A stretch of 64,000 nucleotides of DNA from Anthoceros angustus (lineage: Eukaryota; Plantae; Anthocerotophyta), in the NCBI GenBank assembly GCA_010909165.1, contig MU008180.1, positions 371,884 through 435,883 on the forward strand, written 5' to 3'. Under the pieces are notes generated by a model. That model searched no databases. It saw nothing but the letters and a program-made list of their open reading frames with translations, and was not told the origin of the DNA. Position 1 is the stretch's first letter. Every line of letters starts with the position of its first letter. Position numbers and translations under genes: made by a program. Below, piece after piece: positions 7,825 through 64,000 of this stretch.

Positions 7825-9280
7825 ATGGCGATGGGCTCAAGTAACCACCGCGGCCTTGAGGACGCGGGTGTTTGATGGAACGGAGTTCCATGTATGGAAA
7901 AGGTCCATGAAGGTTACTGGCGATGGCGGAGGGGCGTATGGCATTGCCGAGGGCAAAGAGCCAAAACCCGAAGATGAGGGGAGAGAGCAGAGAGAATGGA
8001 TGCGGAGAGACCACAAGTCTGACTCTCCTATATGAATCTCTCTCGGTCCGGTGAAGGTCGGAGAACCAGACAAGGGCACGGAGTACATTTGGAATGTTCT
8101 CAATGAGAAATATGGCCAGAAGGGAGCAGGTGAAGTATTTCACTTGTTTTGTTGTGTGACGACATTGAAGTATTCAGACGGAGACGATTTGCGAAAGCAC
8201 ATTGACACCTTTCACGAACTGTTTACAGCGCTAGCATCAGCTAACGAGCGCTTTGCTATCCAGGAGGACATACAGAAGATGTTTCTATATCGTTTTATGC
8301 CCGAACCTTGGTCAGGGTTCATAGATTTCCTAATAGCCCAAGACACTCTCACATGGGAGGAGGTCACCTCTAAGATGTTGGCGAAGGAGACTCACCAGTT
8401 GGACGCAATGGCGGGATCTTCAACAGGTCCGGAGCATGCGATGTTCATCAAGGGGAAGGGACGGAACAACCGGAACAAGGATAAGCAGGGGTAGTCCTCG
8501 CAGGGACAGAAGGACAAGAGAATAGTGAAGAGGGGATAGTGCCGGAAATGCTTCAAGTATGGTCATTATGAGAAGGATTGCAAGGATGGGAAGACCGCAC
8601 ATCTTACGGAGGGTGAGAGTAAAGGTGAGGTTGCGGAGGCAACGCTCGCAGAAGAAGTATCGCACGCGTGCTACAGTACACAAGCGAAACGATACCTGAC
8701 GATAGATTCTGCATGTACATCCTTTATGGTGAAGGATAAGGAGCTCCTTCAAGACTACAGGAGGGAGAAGACAGCGGTGCGCCTAGGGAACGATAGCGAG
8801 ATAGGCGTCGAGGGTGTGGGGGAGTACAGGCTCAGATTGCTCGATGGCAAGGTCAAGGCAATGGAAGGAGCGTTGTTTGTACCGAACCTACGTAGAAATC
8901 TCATGTCCGTGGCACCATTGCCCGATGCAGTCTTCAGGTCCTTTTTACGAAGAAGGAAGTTTTGTTTCTGAAGAATGGTCAGATGCATGGCGATGTGGTG
9001 GCAAAAGGCTACCGTACAGGGAACTTGTACCAGATGGAGGTTCCTAACGACCAAGAGGTTCTGACAGTGTCGGAGAAAGGTGGAAATGCCTTACTGTGGC
9101 ATAGACGGTTTGGGCATACCAACTTGAAGTTTCTCCTGGAGATGGAGCGGAAGAAGCTCGTGACAGGCATGGAGCTCCAGAAGGCAGAACTTGGTCTGTG
9201 TGACGCTTGTATGAAAGGCAAGCATCCCCAAAGGTCTTATGTTTCAGTCACGAAGAGAGCAAAAGAAGTCTTGGAACTTG
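7825..9280 (+). mobile_element. Ty1/Copia gag-protease-GAG-pre-integrase (frameshifted), interrupted at 9281
   Basis: FDGTEFHVW, UBN2-like gag, knuckle KCFKYGHYEKDC, protease IDSACTSFM, LWHRRFGH, CDACMKGKH, and RAKEVLEL just before the insertion point. Confidence 0.92.
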
Positions 9281-11529
9281 CACTACTACAATGCATTGGG
9301 ATTTATGACGAGCTAGAAATAACGTCAACGAATTTCCGTCATAAATCCGACATATCTGGACACAACCGGTAGTCGAGCAGTGTACGGGATGCTTGGTAAC
9401 GGGATGAGTAAATGACGCGCGGTCCCAGCGTCATATTTCGGCCTGGTGCCCGGTCACATGTCCACTTTATGGGTGGTTTGCCGCCACCTTCCTTATTGCG
9501 GCTAGTGCCGCTAAGGGCCGGCCTCACTCGCTTGTGCTCGGACATGCCTGGACCCGCAAGGCGACACAGGTTTTCCCAAATGTCATTTCCGCCCAAAGCG
9601 AGGCCGGATCTCGATCGGAGCATGCATGAACCCCAGCTTGGACGATGTACACCGGACGTGAGGGACCCTGCCAGTCGCGATGAACCGGGTTCACTTGTTG
9701 TCCGTGCATTCTCAAGCGTGAGAAACGATTGGACCATAGACATAGTCTCGGGTCTCGCGGACAGGTGAAGTGGCAACACTTTATTGCACTTCCCCCTCAA
9801 TAGGCGCGACGCCAATTGAGTCTCAATCTGCCTGGACTCACACAGGCTGCATTGCGGCAACAAAATGCCCGAAGCCGGAATGACAAATCGGAAGTCCTTC
9901 GAATTGAACAACGGTCACAGGTTGGGCACTGGCCCCAACATCGATCTACGGGCAAAAAAACAATCCGCTACAGTTCGGAGCTGACAGTAAACAAGTTTGT
10001 GAGTTCGCAATTACGCGAGGGTCCGGTTCTGCCAGTGCCTAATCCAACTCAATCAAGGGGGCCATGACAATGACTTGCACAACCCGGCCCGAGGCTGAAA
10101 TTTGAAAGCATACGACTTGCCCGCCACAATGGCCCAGCCCTTCCTCCCTCCAATGCAATGGCAAGCGCGGACGATCAAATTGCACGCCCCAAGCACTTGA
10201 GCAGCTCCTTCTTCGTTGAATCGGACGCTGGAGTAGCACACCATATGCTCTGTATCATTGTAAACAAAGGGCAGGCGCATTGCGTGGCCAACAGATACAT
10301 GATTGTCGAGATCCTTCTTCAAAATTGAAATGTCCCCCAACTTGCGGCAAGTTGCATATAGAACATCTGTCATCACTCTCCACAGTCACATCCCGCGAGG
10401 CTCGGTGTCTATCCCAAGGAGGCCCCACTGTCTGCACATGAACTTGCCTGCCCATGTATGAGTCGCGAATCTCCTCGGTGCATATCGATTTCAACTCTCG
10501 GTCGGGATCATCACCTCTGGGTGCCCGAGGGAGGTGATCCCGATGTCGGCTCAAAAGCCGGTTCCGCTCTACGAGAATGTCAAACTTGCTCCCAAGCGGT
10601 AAGGGACAAAGAAAAGACGAGTTGCCGGTGTGCCTACCTCAACCACAACTGACAAATGCAGCAGGGGAGTCACAGTCCGCATTTCTTCAATGATATCGAC
10701 GATGTAAGCACCCAGCTCTTGCGCGGGCATTGCATAGCCCAGGAGTGCAGCACATGCCACCCACCAATTCCGAACGTCCCAGTGATGCATCTCACGACGA
10801 AGGCGGAGGGCGTCGTCCACCGCCGTGAGCAATTACAAACTCCGTTCTAGGCCACTCAACATAGTCGCCTCGCCACTGAGCACCCAATGACCATGCCGGG
10901 GTCCAAATTGCGGGGTGTCCACCGTCTGCACCGATATGCTTTGGCACACATAGTCCCGCAAGGGAGGTCTCGTGAATGCTCCCAGCTCCAGATAGGCTCT
11001 GGTCCATGCCGCGCAACACCGAAGCTTCCTCTTTGTGCCACAGGTGTCGCCACTTCCAAATGTACAGGTGTTTCTTCGGTGACAGAACGCCCTCCAGACG
11101 GCGGTGAACCTCCCCCAGATGCCACGGACGCAGAGATGATCCGAAGGGCCTATCGCCACATCCGCTACCGTGCCACAGTGTCGCCACATCGGCTACCGTG
11201 CCAATTCATGCCTTCGATTGCCAAGCTTGCCCCTCACTCATCACCGGTGCCATTCCAAACCACCGAATCGATCGGACGAACAGAGATGATCCGAAGGGCC
11301 TATCGCCAAGAAGGAACAGATGGGGATTGGGCAGAGCTTTCGCATTGGGCGTAGGTGCTATGTACTCGGACACTAACTCGAGCGTAAACCATGTCGGCGG
11401 TAGGAAGAAACCGATTCCACACAAGCGTAATCTACCGTCGATTCAAGATCGGTTTCGATGTGACCATTCACACTTGGGCGTAAAGGACTGGGAGCAAGAC
11501 ATTCCTGCTATCTGCCACATCTGGCTACC

Positions 11530-56945: not shown

Positions 56946-59790
56946 ATGGATGTGGACGACGCTGCTTGTTCCGAGGGGGATGTGATTCCCACTCAGTTGA
57001 TGCAGCCGGGGGAAATCCTACACACGCAGTCCTGAATTTTGCCGGTCTTCTCCAAGAAGAGGGAGGCATCCACCTGCTCCTCCAACTCGGCTGCCGTCGA
57101 GCACCACGATGGGGAAATGAAGTTGGTGGATTTGCTGGAGCGGCTCCGGCTTGGTGACCTGGCTGTGACGGAGGTGCCACCGATTTGAGTGGTGATGCAT
57201 CATGGCATCCCCTACAGAAATAGGAAGCTTGGGGTTTTCAAGGAGCTCGGGAGCCAATTCCGTCCGGTGAAGGTGGTCTCCTTGGATGACTGTGGGAAGG
57301 AGTTTTACCGAAAGTGGGACTCCCCAAGCTCGGGGAAAAGCGTGTCCTTCTACAGCGAGTCGGAGCGGAAGGAGAAGTTGCATCAAACGTCTACGGTGTC
57401 CTGAGCTGGTGTCTGGAGTGCGTGCAGAGCAAGAAGCTGTACAGGGCCAGGTAGTATGCACATTGGATTAGGTAGGGTAAATTTGCACGCAACTGCATTG
57501 TTGCATTGGGGCAATTGTTGTTTTGTGTGAGGGAGAGGAACGAGCCTGACCATGCGGTCTCAATGACTGAGTGTTGGATTTGGTGTGCACTGTGCCCGGA
57601 ACAGGCGAAGCGCATTGGGCTGACTTCCGAGTCCGTGGTGCGATATGTGAGGGCCTTTAAATGGCCTTTGCTGGAGGAGACCAGAGGCACCATTGAACAG
57701 GAGCTGGAGGGTGTAGAAGCCGCGCCTCGTTTCCAGTTCTCGGCGCGAGAGCTCAGACATTTGTAAGGTGTGGGTTGGTTCCAGACTTTCGAGCTGAAGG
57801 TCTCAGAAGGGGCTTACCACCCCAGGACCAATGATCTGGTTCTGTTCTCAACAGAAAGTCTCCATGAGCTTAACAGGGCGACCTACATGTTTGGCTATAT
57901 TAAGAGGGTGGTCAACGCTGGAGGCTGTAACTTGCGGTGCAGCACTCTTGTGCATGCACCAGATCATAGTACCGAGCTGCTCTTCAGGACGACAATGCAC
58001 CATGGACTGTTCTCCTCATCAGCAACTTAGGTACCAAGTTGAGAGATTTGGGACACTCTGGCGTCGCTGTGTAAGGATTCTAGATTACGAGGACTTGCAG
58101 GACTAGTACTGCAAGAGATTCTCCAGCCGGAGTTGTACTGCTTGATATGCTCAACAGCTGTCTGGGAGAAATGTCTGATCATGAGCATTGTTGCACTGTT
58201 GGTTTTCAGACAGTTTGAGCGGATGGTTTTGTCAAAGCTGGCTTGGTTCTATGTTTTGTAGACATGTCCCCAGTTGCCAACCTATGGCGTTTGATGAAGT
58301 AGAGCTGCCTGTGAGAGCCTACTGTGAAGATGTCAGATCCATGAATCAGTCCCAAGTGGAAGCAGGTATACATGCAGTGTCTGGACTTGTGAGCTGAGTT
58401 GCACCCGAGTCCAGGACCACCAGCAACGGGGAAGACTTCCCTTCCGGTCTCTTCATTGTCTACACTTGGCAGCATGAGTTACAGAGTCCACTTGGCTGCA
58501 CCAACCAACACGGCCATTTGTGAGGTTGCTTTCAGGTTTGTGTCACAGATGTTGGTTCTTGAGCAGAGGGATAAATAGTTTGGTGCCTGTTTTCCACATG
58601 TAGTGATTCGTGGCAAAGGAAGCAGGGTGTTGAACCTAGGAGACGCAGTACTTGTTAGGACCGAAGAGGGAATAAACCCGAGACCTATGCAGTGCTGGAG
58701 AGGATTTTTCTACCCCGCAGGGTGAGCAGATTGGTGGACGCTTTCTCGGGCCACAAGAAGTGTGGTGAGGCTCTCAGCAACTTGCTGGAATGTGCGTTAG
58801 AAGAATACGAGAGGCACAGACAATCCTCACCGCCCCCTGACAACGGCGAGGAGCCACAATTATTAGTCACTCTCGTCAGGAAGAATTTGAAGGACCTCAG
58901 TTCGTCTGTGATCCGCCATGGTCATACTCTATTCCTGGACATGCCTAGCGTCTTTCTTACCTCTGAAACAAGGCAGAGCGTAGATCAAGCTTCACTTCTC
59001 ACAAAGCAGGTTGTTGCGTATTTCAATAAGCAGGATATTTCTGATGCAGACGTTGTCCCCTACACCCGCGGAACGTAGTCCTGTATCATGGGTACTCGAT
59101 AAGGTGAAAAGTGATTCTCTAATTCTTGGTTCCTGTGGAGAGGCAGGTTGTGGTATGCTTGCAGGAAGTGTCCCCTCTGCAGGCCACCGTGAACATCATT
59201 GTGTCCGAAACTCCTAGATCGTCTTTAGTACAGTTGCCTCGGGTGGCCGCGAAATTGTACAGCGCTCTGGCACCTTCGACCGTGTGTTGATTGATGAAGC
59301 CTCCCAACTTGTGGAGGCAGAAATGCTTGTGATAATAAAGTCCCCCCAACTGCGACAAGTTTTGCTGGTCGCGGACCATAAGCAGTCGGCACCCACGGTT
59401 CTCAGTCAGGTAACTTTCCCTGAGAACCGCCCTGGACATTTCCAGGAAGCCCAATCCAGGAGCTGATCTTGCTGTTACATAGGTGGCGAAGAAGTGCGAA
59501 TACGTCCGCAGTCTCCTCGCCAGACTCCACGAGCTAAAGCATCCCTGCCAAATGGTGGATGCGCAGTGTCGGATGCATCCAGACATCACTAATAAGGCGT
59601 TTTATGCAGTAGATGTCGAGAATGGTGCCAATGTTTTGTCGGAAAAATATTCGAGCAAGCTGATACAGGACACATCCATGAAAACATACCGCCTTCTGGA
59701 CATTTCAGATGGAACAGAGAAGAAGGACTTCAGACAACGCTCTCACATCGACTCGGTAGAAGTAGCAATTGTGAGTCACTTAATTGATCC
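56946..59790 (+). pseudogene. Copy 2 of ParB-like/SEN1-like helicase, pseudogene truncated after exon 4
   Basis: Colinear with copies 1 and 3. Nonsense changes (tcc tga ~57030, att tga ~57187), deletions in the DNRRL and Walker A regions, DEASQ retained; homology stops at ~59790. Confidence 0.9.
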
Positions 59791-60431: not shown

Positions 60432-60494
60432 GCCATTACGCTCCGGCGGCGGGCCATTACGCTCCGGCGGCGGGCCAGTACGCTCCGGCTGCCG
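60432..60494 (+). repeat. 21-bp tandem repeat x3 upstream of copy 3
   Basis: gccattacgctccggcggcgg x2 plus gccagtacgctccggctgccg. Confidence 0.9.
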
Positions 60495-60646: not shown

Positions 60647-63600
60647 ATGGATGGGGACGAAGCTGCAAGTTCTGAGGGAAATGTGATTCCGACTCAGCTG
60701 ATGGAGCCGGGGGATATCCGGTACACGCAGTCCTCAATCTCGCCGGTCTTCTCCAAGAGGAGGGCGCCGGCCGCTTGCGCCTCCTACTCGGCTGCCGTGA
60801 AGCACCACGATGGGGGAGGGACGTTGGAGGGCATGCTGAAGCAGCTCCGGAGTGGTGACTTGGCTGTCACGGATGTGCCACCGATTCGAGTGGTGATGCG
60901 CGATGGCGTCCCCTACAGCCTGGACAATAGGAGGCTTTGGGTTTTCAAGGAGCTTGGGAAGCCAATTCCGGTACAAGTGGTCGCCTTGGATGACCGCGAG
61001 AAGGAGTTTTTCCGAAAGTGGGACTCGCAAGGCTCGGGGAAGAGCGTGTCCATTTCCGGGAAGTCGGAGCGAGACGAGAAGTATCACCCAACGCCGATGG
61101 TGAACGAAGTCCTGACCTGGTGTCTGGACAACGTGCAGAGCACGAAGATGTACGAGAACAAGGTAGTGTGCACATTGGGTAAATTTGCACGCAATTGCCT
61201 TGTTGCGGTCATTGTTGCACTGTGAAGTGATTGTTGTTTTGTGAGGGAGAGGAACGAGTCTGATCATGCGGTCGCCGGGACTGAGTGTGGGATTTTGGGT
61301 GCACTGTGCGGGGGACAGGCAAAGCCAATTGGGCTGACGTTCGAGTCTCTGGAGCGGTATCTGAAGGGCTTTAAGTGGGCTTTGCTGGAGGAGACAAGAG
61401 CCAGCGTTGAACAGCAGCTGGAGGATATAGGAGCTGCCCCTCGTTTCCAGGTCTCGGCGCGACAACTCAAAGGTTTGCGTGGTGGGGCTAAGTTCAAGAC
61501 CTTCGAGCTGACGGTCCCAGAAGGGACTTACCAGCCCAGGACCAAGGATCTGGTTCTGTTCTCAACAGTATGGCCTGAGGGTCTCCACGACCTTAACAGG
61601 GCGACCTACATGTTTGGTTCTCTGAGGCAGAACTTCGAGGCTGAGGGCTCTAACGATAACTTGAGGTTCAGTGCTCATGTCCATGCACCAGATTATAGTC
61701 CCGAGTCTGTTGCTCTTCTGGACGACAAGGCAACATGGACTGTTCTTCACATCACCAACTTAGCTACCAAGTTGAGGATTTGGGACACTTTGGCGTCTCT
61801 GTATGAGGATCCTACACCTCAAGAAGGTGCAGGACCAGTACTGCAAGAGGTTATCCGGGCGGAGTTGGACTGCTGGGTATGCCCAACAGACGCTTTAGAG
61901 AAATGTCTGATCATGAGAATCGTTTGCACAAATGTCTGATCATGAGCCCTGCTGCACTGTTTGTTTTCAGACAACCTGATCATGAGCGGGGATGGGTTTC
62001 TAAAAGCTGGCCTGGTCTTTGTTATGTACACAGGTTCCAAGTTGCCAACGTATGGCGTTTGATGAAGTAGAGCTGCCAGTGAGAACCTACTGTGAAGATG
62101 TCAGATCCATGAATCAGTCCCAAGTGGAAGCCGTTATACATGCGGTGTCTGGACTTGTGAACAGAGTTGCACCTCGAGTAAGACTCATACAAGGACCACC
62201 AGGGACGGGAAAGACTTCCATGCTGGTCTCTTTATTGTCTATACTTGGCAGCATGAGTTACAGAGTCCACATGTCTGCACCAACCAACACAGCCATTTGT
62301 GAGGTTGCTTCCAGGTTTGTTTCACAGATGTTGGTCCGTGAGCAGAAGCAAGTACAGTTTGGTGCCTGTTTTCCACGTGTGGTGGTTCGTGGCGAAGGAA
62401 GCAGGGTGTTGAATTTGGGAGACGTAGTACTTGTTGGGAGCGAAGAGGGAATAGACCTCGAGACCCATGAAGTGCTGGAAAGGATTTATCTGCCCCGCAG
62501 GGTGAGCAGATTGTTGGAGGCCTTGTCTTGTATCACTGGCTATAAGAAATGTGCCGAGGCTCTCAGGAACTTCCTGAAATGTGCGTTATCAGAATTCGAG
62601 AGGTATACCCAATACACCCGTGACGACGGTGAGGAGCCACTGTCATTAGTCAATTTCGTGAGGAAAAATTTGAAGGTCCTCAGTTCGTCTGTGATCCGCC
62701 AGTCTCATACTCTAATCCAAGACGTGCCAAGCGTCTTTCTTACCTCTGAAACAAGGGAGAGGTTTTATCAAGCTTCACTCCTCACAGAGTATGTGGTTGC
62801 GTATTTCAATACGCAGGATTTTTCTGATGAAGAAATAAGTATATTGCTGTCCCCTACACCCGCCAAACTTGGTCGTGTATCAGGGATACTTGATATGAAG
62901 TTGCTGAATTTTGAGGATTTTGTGAAAGTGAAAAATGATCTTCTTCAGATTCTGGGCTCCTGTGGAGTGGACGGTTGTGGTATGGTTCCAGGAAATGTCC
63001 CCTCTGCAGGCCTTCTTGAAAATCTTTGTATGCGAAACTCCAAGATCCTGTTCAGTACGGTTTCGACAGGTGGCAAAAACTGTGTGCAGAGTTCTGGCAC
63101 CTTCGACTGTGTGATTATTGATGAAGCCTCCCAACTTGTGGAGGCAGAAACGTTGGTGGTGATGAATTCCCCCAAATTGCAACAAGTTTTGCTGGTCGGG
63201 GACCATAAACAGTTGGCACCCACGGTTCTCAGTCAGGTAACTTTCCTTGATAAGCAACCTTGCACACGTGCTTGGGCCAACTTCATGGGTCCGCTCCATT
63301 AACTTTCGAGGAAGCCTGAAAGTAGATGTTGGTAATCTCAGGTGGCGAAGAAGTGGGGATACGATCGCAGCCTCTTCACAAGACTCCACGAGCTAAAGCG
63401 TCCCTGCCAAATGCTGAATGTGCAGTATCGGATGCATCCAGACATCAGTCTTTTCCCTCATGAGAAATTTTACGCAGGAGATGTCAAGAATGGTCCCAAT
63501 GTTTTGTCAGAAGCGTATTCAATCAAGCCGATTCAAGACACATTCATGAAAACGTACAGCTTTCTGGATGTTTCAGATGGGACAGAGGAAATGGAGTTTG

Positions 63601-64000
63601 GACAACGCTCTTACACCAATTCGGTAGAAGTAGCGATTGTGATGCACTTGATTGACAAGCTCAACCAAGGTGAGTATAGTCATTGGTGCTGGCTGCCCTG
63701 TTTCTGAAATCTTGCTCACAAGAAGCAATGTTTCATGTGCGTGCTCTCGGTGCGGTTTCACCATCTTTCAAACCAATCAACGTTGACTGAGTGATCCGTT
63801 GTGCTCATCAGTTTGTGCAGCGAAGGATATTTTCCTGTCGGTTGGAGTAATAGCTCCATATCGAGGACAAGTAGAGGCGTTAGCCCGACGTCTTGATGGG
63901 GATGACAGACTCTTTTCCAACGTCACCGCTGAAGTGCGATCAGTTGACGGCTTCCAAGGCAGGGAGAAAGATGTCATCATTTTCTCTGCAGTTCGATCGA
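60647..64000 (+). CDS. Copy 3: apparently intact ParB/Srx-like domain + DUF6469 + SEN1/UPF1-like SF1 helicase (3' end outside window)
   Basis: Exons 60647-61162, 61319-61876, 62034-63236, 63342-63669 and 63812->64000 splice in frame with GT-AG and no stops. Motifs: [86 protein letters not shown]. Confidence 0.92.

Follow-up and report, generated by a model that had tools for sequence, protein, structure and literature searches.

The closest described relatives of the domain studied here are the Tox-ParBL1 domains, which were defined in 2012 by Zhang, de Souza, Anantharaman, Iyer and Aravind (PMC3482391). The definition combines a predicted ParB fold, an N-terminal [ST] that is absent from classical ParB, and a [NT][RT][RT] motif, mostly N-R-R, which is the equivalent of DGHHR in classical Tox-ParB; the same text reports an HHpred link to ParB of 93% and records the family from numerous bacteria as well as from eukaryotes, Viridiplantae among them. 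ToxB (CdiA), which has a classical ParB fold, binds and slowly hydrolyzes ATP via G105-N106-H107-R108; it has no DNA-binding domain and causes cell death in N. benthamiana, an activity abolished by mutation of R108 (bioRxiv 10.64898/2026.05.05.722872). ToxB is thus a precedent for the killing of plant cells by a ParB-fold domain.

Sulfiredoxin (Srx) is a single-domain ParB-fold enzyme of eukaryotes and was, according to the text of Zhang et al. (PMC3482391), acquired by eukaryotes independently. The CTP switches ParB, Noc and KorB combine the fold and an arginine-rich P-motif at a helix N-terminus with an HTH, a C-terminal dimerization domain and a ParA-binding motif. On the helicase side, seed plants have DUF6469 helicases, annotated as 'probable helicase MAGATAMA 3' or 'P-loop NTPase', which start with VFSWSL.DVLN..LYK.KV..IP.TF......PLLEETRA.

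A tblastn search of the window (the whole 64-kb stretch of DNA that was analyzed) revealed three copies of a fusion between a ParBL1 domain and a helicase of this type, all on the + strand. The fusion is thus present in all three copies, as the preliminary description had proposed, but not intact in all of them, since two of the three are pseudogenes:

2135..~6546, + strand: copy 1, with exon 1 (2135-2608) intact, the helicase exons frameshifted and a copia-like insertion behind (reading frames)
56946..59788, + strand: copy 2, a pseudogene of the ParBL1-helicase fusion, with in-frame stops TQS*IL and PPI*VV inside the domain, SLDN lost and frame breaks

These pseudogene calls are based on reading frames and stop codons; DNA-level indel counts are unreliable between copies at 80% identity. 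Exons 2 and 3 of copy 1 each run over three frames, one of the breaks being the loss of 1 bp from the codon for the Walker A lysine, and the copy ends before the UvrD/TRANK1-like region, beside the copia-like insertion. Comparison of copy 1 with copy 3 gave an only moderately low dN/dS of 0.44 for the ParBL1 domain, against 0.28 for a helicase exon. Copy 3 alone is intact up to the end of the window; copies 1 and 2 are dead. Copia-like gag and integrase ORFs were found at 8051-9372, just downstream of copy 1, and probably mark the truncating insertion.

Copy 3 extends from 60647 to the window end and has the following features:

60647..61162, + strand: exon 1, encoding the ParBL1 domain, a linker and the first helicase N-terminal motif VLTWCLDNV...NK (ATG-to-GT ORF, conserved intron position, spliced contig of a homologue)
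60686..61027, + strand: ParBL1 (ParB/Srx-fold) core as predicted, ~110 aa, aa 14-127 (profile search, conservation, AlphaFold2, fold matches)
61163..61318, + strand: intron 1, GT..AG, phase 0 (sequence; joint 61160/61317, cut +2, in a contig of run X1)
61319..61876, + strand: exon 2, DUF6469-type region (Pfam DUF6469 E=4e-4, below cut-off; homology to the DUF6469 regions of relatives)
62034..63236, + strand: exon 3, SF1 helicase domain 1 with Walker A GPPGTGKT, Walker B DEASQ and GDHKQLAPTV (Pfam AAA_11 E=1.2e-33; ORF intact)
63342..63669, + strand: exon 4, start of helicase domain 2 (Pfam AAA_12 E=1.9e-23; intron 3 from the spliced homologue contig, 63236/63342)
63821..64000, + strand: exon 5, partial, with PYRGQ and DGFQGREKD; the gene exceeds the window (sequence reading; tblastn vs P0156 and P0010)

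Exon 1 opens with an ATG at 60647 and continues as a 172-codon frame to 61162, where a GT donor follows at 61163. Its product reads IRYTQSSISPVF ... PPIRVVMRDGVPYSLDNRRLWVFKELGKPIPVQV, then a linker, then VNEVLTWCLDNVQSTKMYENK; exon 2 opens with AKPIGLTFESLERYLKGFKWALLEETRA at 61319. The first half of the seed-plant start motif is encoded in exon 1, in frame behind ParBL1, and the second half forms the start of exon 2. Because seed-plant DUF6469 helicases begin at the second motif of exon 1, ParBL1 and the helicase N-terminus lie on one exon, and the frame 60647-61162 bears out the earlier claim of a ~130-aa N-terminal domain whose exon runs into the start of plant DUF6469 helicases. A Pfam scan at E<=1 gave no match to exon 1, and DUF6469 scored 20.9 bits on exon 2 against a cut-off of 27. 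The SF1 motifs GPPGTGKT, DEASQ, GDHKQLAPTV, YRMHP, PYRGQ and DGFQGREKD are all intact, and the ~2.8 kb of coding sequence contains neither stop nor frameshift up to the window end, with canonical GT..AG splice sites. The helicase had been described as SEN1-like and additionally TRANK1-like; the SEN1/DUF6469-type part stood (AAA_11, AAA_12), but no match to a TRANK1-like UvrD module appeared at E<=1e-4 anywhere in the window, beyond whose end copy 3 continues. Selaginella P0010 contains a UvrD module downstream of its SF1 module.

Contigs from RNA run X1, which match the window at ~85-91% identity, have their splice junctions exactly at 61162/61319 and 63236/63342 and begin ~125 nt upstream of the ATG position. 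Judged by this identity they come from a relative or paralogue and support splicing in the family, not expression of copy 3; the RNA runs searched yielded such homologue contigs only and no transcript of copy 3 itself. The proposed joining of exon 1 to the helicase exons was therefore seen in the contig of a ~90% identical homologue rather than in copy 3. The first exon also ends at the same place (...NK then GT) in 6 relatives from four independent SRA assemblies, and in all 6 the DUF6469, AAA_11 and AAA_12 exons come after it on the same strand. Given the shared exon, the conserved first-exon end and the splicing of the homologue, copy 3 is a single gene, not two. Upstream of its ATG (~150-200 bp), at 60433-60492, a 21-bp unit, CCATTACGCTCCGGCGGCGGG, is repeated ~2.7 times in tandem, just upstream of the alignment start of the homologous transcript contig.

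A three-sequence profile of the ParBL1 domain, searched against 1.84 billion representatives at E<=1e-3, gave 1303 matches; a word-indexed search with exon 1 returned one protein. In the RHS-repeat proteins P0049, P0105, P0106 and P0136 (E 1e-9 to 1e-11), ParBL1 forms the C-terminus, and a small ORF lies directly 3' of each of these genes; RHS repeats, a C-terminal ParBL1 and a downstream small ORF together make up a polymorphic-toxin hallmark. Plant and RHS members are ~40% identical and have IR[FY]TQ.S[IV]S..F, L[RK].G, IP.IRVV and YSLDNRRL..F in common, so that the suspected kinship with toxin-type ParB domains held. Alignment of 107 sequences from bacteria to plants showed 97-99% conservation of D93, N94, R95 and R96. 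At aa 24-32, copy 3 has the motif IRYTQSSIS, in which TQSSIS (aa 27-32) provides the N-terminal [ST] of the family; S32 is found in the majority (62%) of the aligned members and Q28 in 90%. All family-wide conserved residues common with the RHS toxin tips are retained in copy 3. An insert of ~15-20 aa between the first strand and the first helix (..SYA.A.K..; F35-G57 of copy 3, modelled with low confidence) sets streptophyte helicase-linked forms (Closterium, Calypogeia, Selaginella and copy 3, but not copy 1) apart from the RHS tips, where it is absent.

Scans of Pfam, NCBIfam and PADLOC with exon 1 and the bacterial tips gave nothing relevant and thus no ParBL1 family model, so public fusion proteins carry no annotation there. 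PF02195 (ParB_N) showed no sequence match to the copy 3 domain (Pfam, E<=1), and HMM searches of PDB sequences with the 3- and 107-sequence profiles produced chance matches only.

An AlphaFold2 model of the domain, built on the 107-sequence alignment, had a pLDDT of 78.5 overall and >90 over aa 61-110. The best 50 Foldseek matches in the PDB all belonged to the ParB/Srx superfamily and included sulfiredoxin, Noc, ParB, SbnI, SerK, KorB and Atu1540, with a best E of 5.8e-3, which is weak, and a probability of ~1.0. VIA-align gave Z scores of 8.8 for Noc, 8.7 for Arabidopsis Srx and 8.2 for ParB (8.0-8.8 over 84-89 residues); Z was at least 5 in 58 of the 210 Foldseek candidates, and all entries at or above this value among those listed were ParB/Srx. 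In the model, helix 94-103 begins with NRR, right after strand 88-91. The corresponding strand-helix position is occupied by GERR in ParB and by GGCHR in Srx. A Z of ~8 is not decisive on its own; the assignment of a ParB/Srx fold to the copy 3 domain, as a prediction, is nevertheless solid because the matches are exclusive, the motif position agrees and the published HHpred link is 93%. The fold that had been anticipated from the pattern I-x-V...(S/T)LDNRRL was thereby recovered by a model that matches ParB/Srx folds only.

Its predicted fold, N-terminal Ser, [NT][RT][RT] motif (NRR) and RHS-tip homology place the N-terminal domain of copy 3 within Tox-ParBL1 as delimited in the text of PMC3482391. 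The architecture differs: in Tox-ParBL1 toxins, the domain is the secreted warhead at the C-terminus and an immunity gene lies next to it, whereas in copy 3 it is N-terminal and in cis with an SF1 helicase. ToxB and, by prediction, the copy 3 domain have a ParB/Srx fold without a DNA-binding domain, and carry a four-residue motif at the same strand-helix position (GNHR and DNRR, respectively); however, PF02195 recognizes ToxB, a member of the classical Tox-ParB branch, but not the ParBL1 of copy 3. Srx (Z 8.7 for the Arabidopsis protein, 86 residues, rmsd 2.7) shows a similar PPI-V ... Y-S ... helix layout but has its catalytic Cys in GGCHR, where the copy 3 domain has DNRR and no Cys. The ParB, Noc and KorB switches share the predicted fold and the arginine-rich P-motif at the helix N-terminus; copy 3 has none of their HTH, C-terminal dimerization domain and ParA-binding motif, nor any sequence-level match to them, and a DUF6469-type region and an SF1 helicase follow its ParBL1 in place of the HTH/dimerization domains of the canonical ParB CTP clamp. 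The seed-plant DUF6469 helicases fall into a common clade with copy 3 (98/97) and share its N-terminal VxSWS...LLEETRA motif and its AAA_11/AAA_12 domains, but the 7 sampled begin at the VxSWS motif, whereas copy 3 has ParBL1 before it.

A search for the same fusion in other proteomes, which the preliminary description had recommended, found it in streptophytes and bacteria, whereas the two animal ParBL1 proteins noted were without helicase. The fusions comprise:

Selaginella moellendorffii EFJ34295.1 (P0010), 2806 aa: fused, with a UvrD module too
Calypogeia fissa P0016, P0004 and P0156: fused
Riccia fluitans P0160: fused, motif degraded to KGNRRL
Closterium P0051 and P0036: fused
Chlamydiia MAG P0176 and its tandem neighbor: uninterrupted ORFs beside a Tn3 transposase
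Metagenome contig with bacterial neighbor genes, P0173: uninterrupted ORF
Logan contig P0174: uninterrupted ORF

Together with the source plant, the taxa with the fusion are bacteria, a zygnematophyte alga (Closterium), liverworts (Calypogeia, Riccia) and a lycophyte (Selaginella), and many non-seed streptophytes have this architecture with the intron at an identical position. The Chlamydiia MAG (GCA_020440385.1) contains two tandem intron-free ParBL1-helicase genes of 905 and 981 aa at L009:1121-6881, with a GC content of 39%. Bacterial and plant fusions align from ParBL1 via the VL.W and LILEE.RA motifs to the helicase end (P0174 aa 43-892 vs P0016 aa 26-991, E=3e-73). None of the 7 seed-plant DUF6469 helicases in the sample, of which six are from angiosperms and one is from the conifer Cryptomeria, had ParBL1, in agreement with the earlier statement that angiosperm DUF6469 helicases lack this N-terminus.

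A helicase-core tree of 38 sequences, thinly sampled and midpoint-rooted, placed the bacterial fusions (100/100) as sister to all plant DUF6469 helicases (98/97) in a joint clade (97/94) apart from Sen1, MAA3, Upf1 and IGHMBP2. Within this clade, fused forms were basal: Closterium branched first, and the fused non-seed plants including copy 3 then stood opposite the unfused seed plants. The domain tree (107 sequences) was resolved too poorly to tell whether the helicase-linked forms arose once. The simplest reading of these sequence data, given the thin sampling and the midpoint root, is an ancestral ParBL1-helicase fusion that disappeared in the lineage leading to seed plants; on that reading, the ancestral form of the DUF6469 helicases carried a toxin-type ParB-fold domain.

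The fusion had been called undescribed, which does not hold in that form: the Tox-ParBL1 family was defined in 2012, already then for Viridiplantae according to the text of PMC3482391, and public hypothetical proteins carry the fusion (Selaginella EFJ34295.1, Calypogeia, Riccia and Closterium). Our literature search, which covered the text of the 2012 paper, found no report on the fusion with a helicase, on where it came from or on its counterparts in bacteria, and searches on DUF6469 and on ParB-like plus Upf1-like returned nothing. For the plant DUF6469 helicases, a large, clustered gene family, these results propose an origin and a hypothesis that can be tested.

Copy 3 is a genuine and, to all appearances, intact member of the plant DUF6469 family that begins with a Tox-ParBL1 domain. 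As to its function, we lean, with slightly better than even confidence, toward an SF1 Upf1/Sen1-like helicase of the DUF6469 family in which the N-terminal Tox-ParBL1 is an NTP-using effector output of the motor. DNRR at the predicted strand-helix junction is here taken as equivalent to the GxxR phosphate motif (ParB GERR, ToxB GNHR), against which stands the replacement of G by D in copy 3. Through DNRR, the domain would bind an NTP and probably hydrolyze it or transfer from it, in an ATP-type rather than a CTP-type manner; by analogy, it is most likely an NTP-binding and probably an NTP-hydrolyzing or phosphotransfer module. Because copy 3 retains the full conserved residue set of the toxin family, its ParBL1 probably keeps the toxin chemistry. 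ParBL1 would then serve as the enzymatic output of a motor tracking along nucleic acid, and the helicase would hold in check, or aim, a cis-tethered toxin-type effector in genome conflict or nucleic-acid surveillance. Such an effector role, drawn from these analogies, is plausible but unproven, and the earlier proposal of a defence sensor coupled to a nucleotide-cleaving effector likewise stands as an inference; the helicase itself can work without ParBL1, since sampled seed plants lack the domain. The tandem cluster with its pseudogenes indicates birth-and-death evolution, which fits a conflict role but is no proof of it.

The main rival to the effector reading is a ParB-style NTP switch, in which ParBL1 would act, as in ParB, Noc and KorB, as an NTP-gated regulatory part; self-association or a conformational change driven by nucleotide would load the helicase on its substrate, clamp it there or license it. 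Noc, ParB and KorB, which are CTP switches, are among the strongest structural matches, the domain is N-terminal as in ParB, and the age and stability of the fusion are what an integrated regulatory part would show. We nevertheless regard such a switch as unlikely: the nearest sequence relatives are stand-alone toxin tips without partner domains, and copy 3 has no HTH and no dimerization domain.

It is quite improbable, in our estimate, that ParBL1 is a catalytically silent relic which binds protein or nucleic acid only, with DNRR as a structural or phosphate-backbone contact. The 97-99% conservation of its four residues over 107 members, typical of an active site, argues against silence, whereas the sampled seed plants that dispense with the domain, the degraded KGNRRL of Riccia and the moderate dN/dS would be compatible with it. 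That the whole locus is a decaying gene cluster or transposon cargo, in which copy 3 has no present function, appears very improbable, even though copies 1 and 2 are pseudogenes, transposons abound in the region and copy 3 itself was in none of the RNA runs searched; the ~2.8 kb of clean coding sequence with all helicase motifs and canonical splice sites, the transcription and splicing of a close homologue, and the conservation of the architecture across streptophytes all point the other way.

If the effector reading is true, a bacterial warhead was domesticated into a plant nucleic-acid surveillance protein. In a wider version, which we consider unlikely as a whole, ParBL1-helicase would be an ancient two-part surveillance enzyme shared horizontally by bacteria (Chlamydiia-like) and the streptophyte ancestor, with a toxin-type ATPase as the lethal or signaling output of a nucleic-acid-tracking motor, and the seed-plant DUF6469 helicases would be its descendants without the warhead. 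A soluble eukaryotic ParBL1 tethered to a helicase could also help to reveal the activity of a widespread toxin family.

Outside the helicase fusions, ParBL1 occurs in the animal proteins P0003 (Tegillarca granosa) and P0005 (Dimorphilus gyrociliatus) as two or three tandem repeats without a helicase, and in Klebsormidium nitens P0007 at the C-terminus of a 555-aa protein without a Pfam domain. Immediately behind the bacterial fusion P0173 lies an ORF (L011:11158-11430) that appeared by eye to be Smr-type (DLHG ... TGWGKH), and this putative Smr-type ORF is unrelated to the 75-aa ORF behind P0176.
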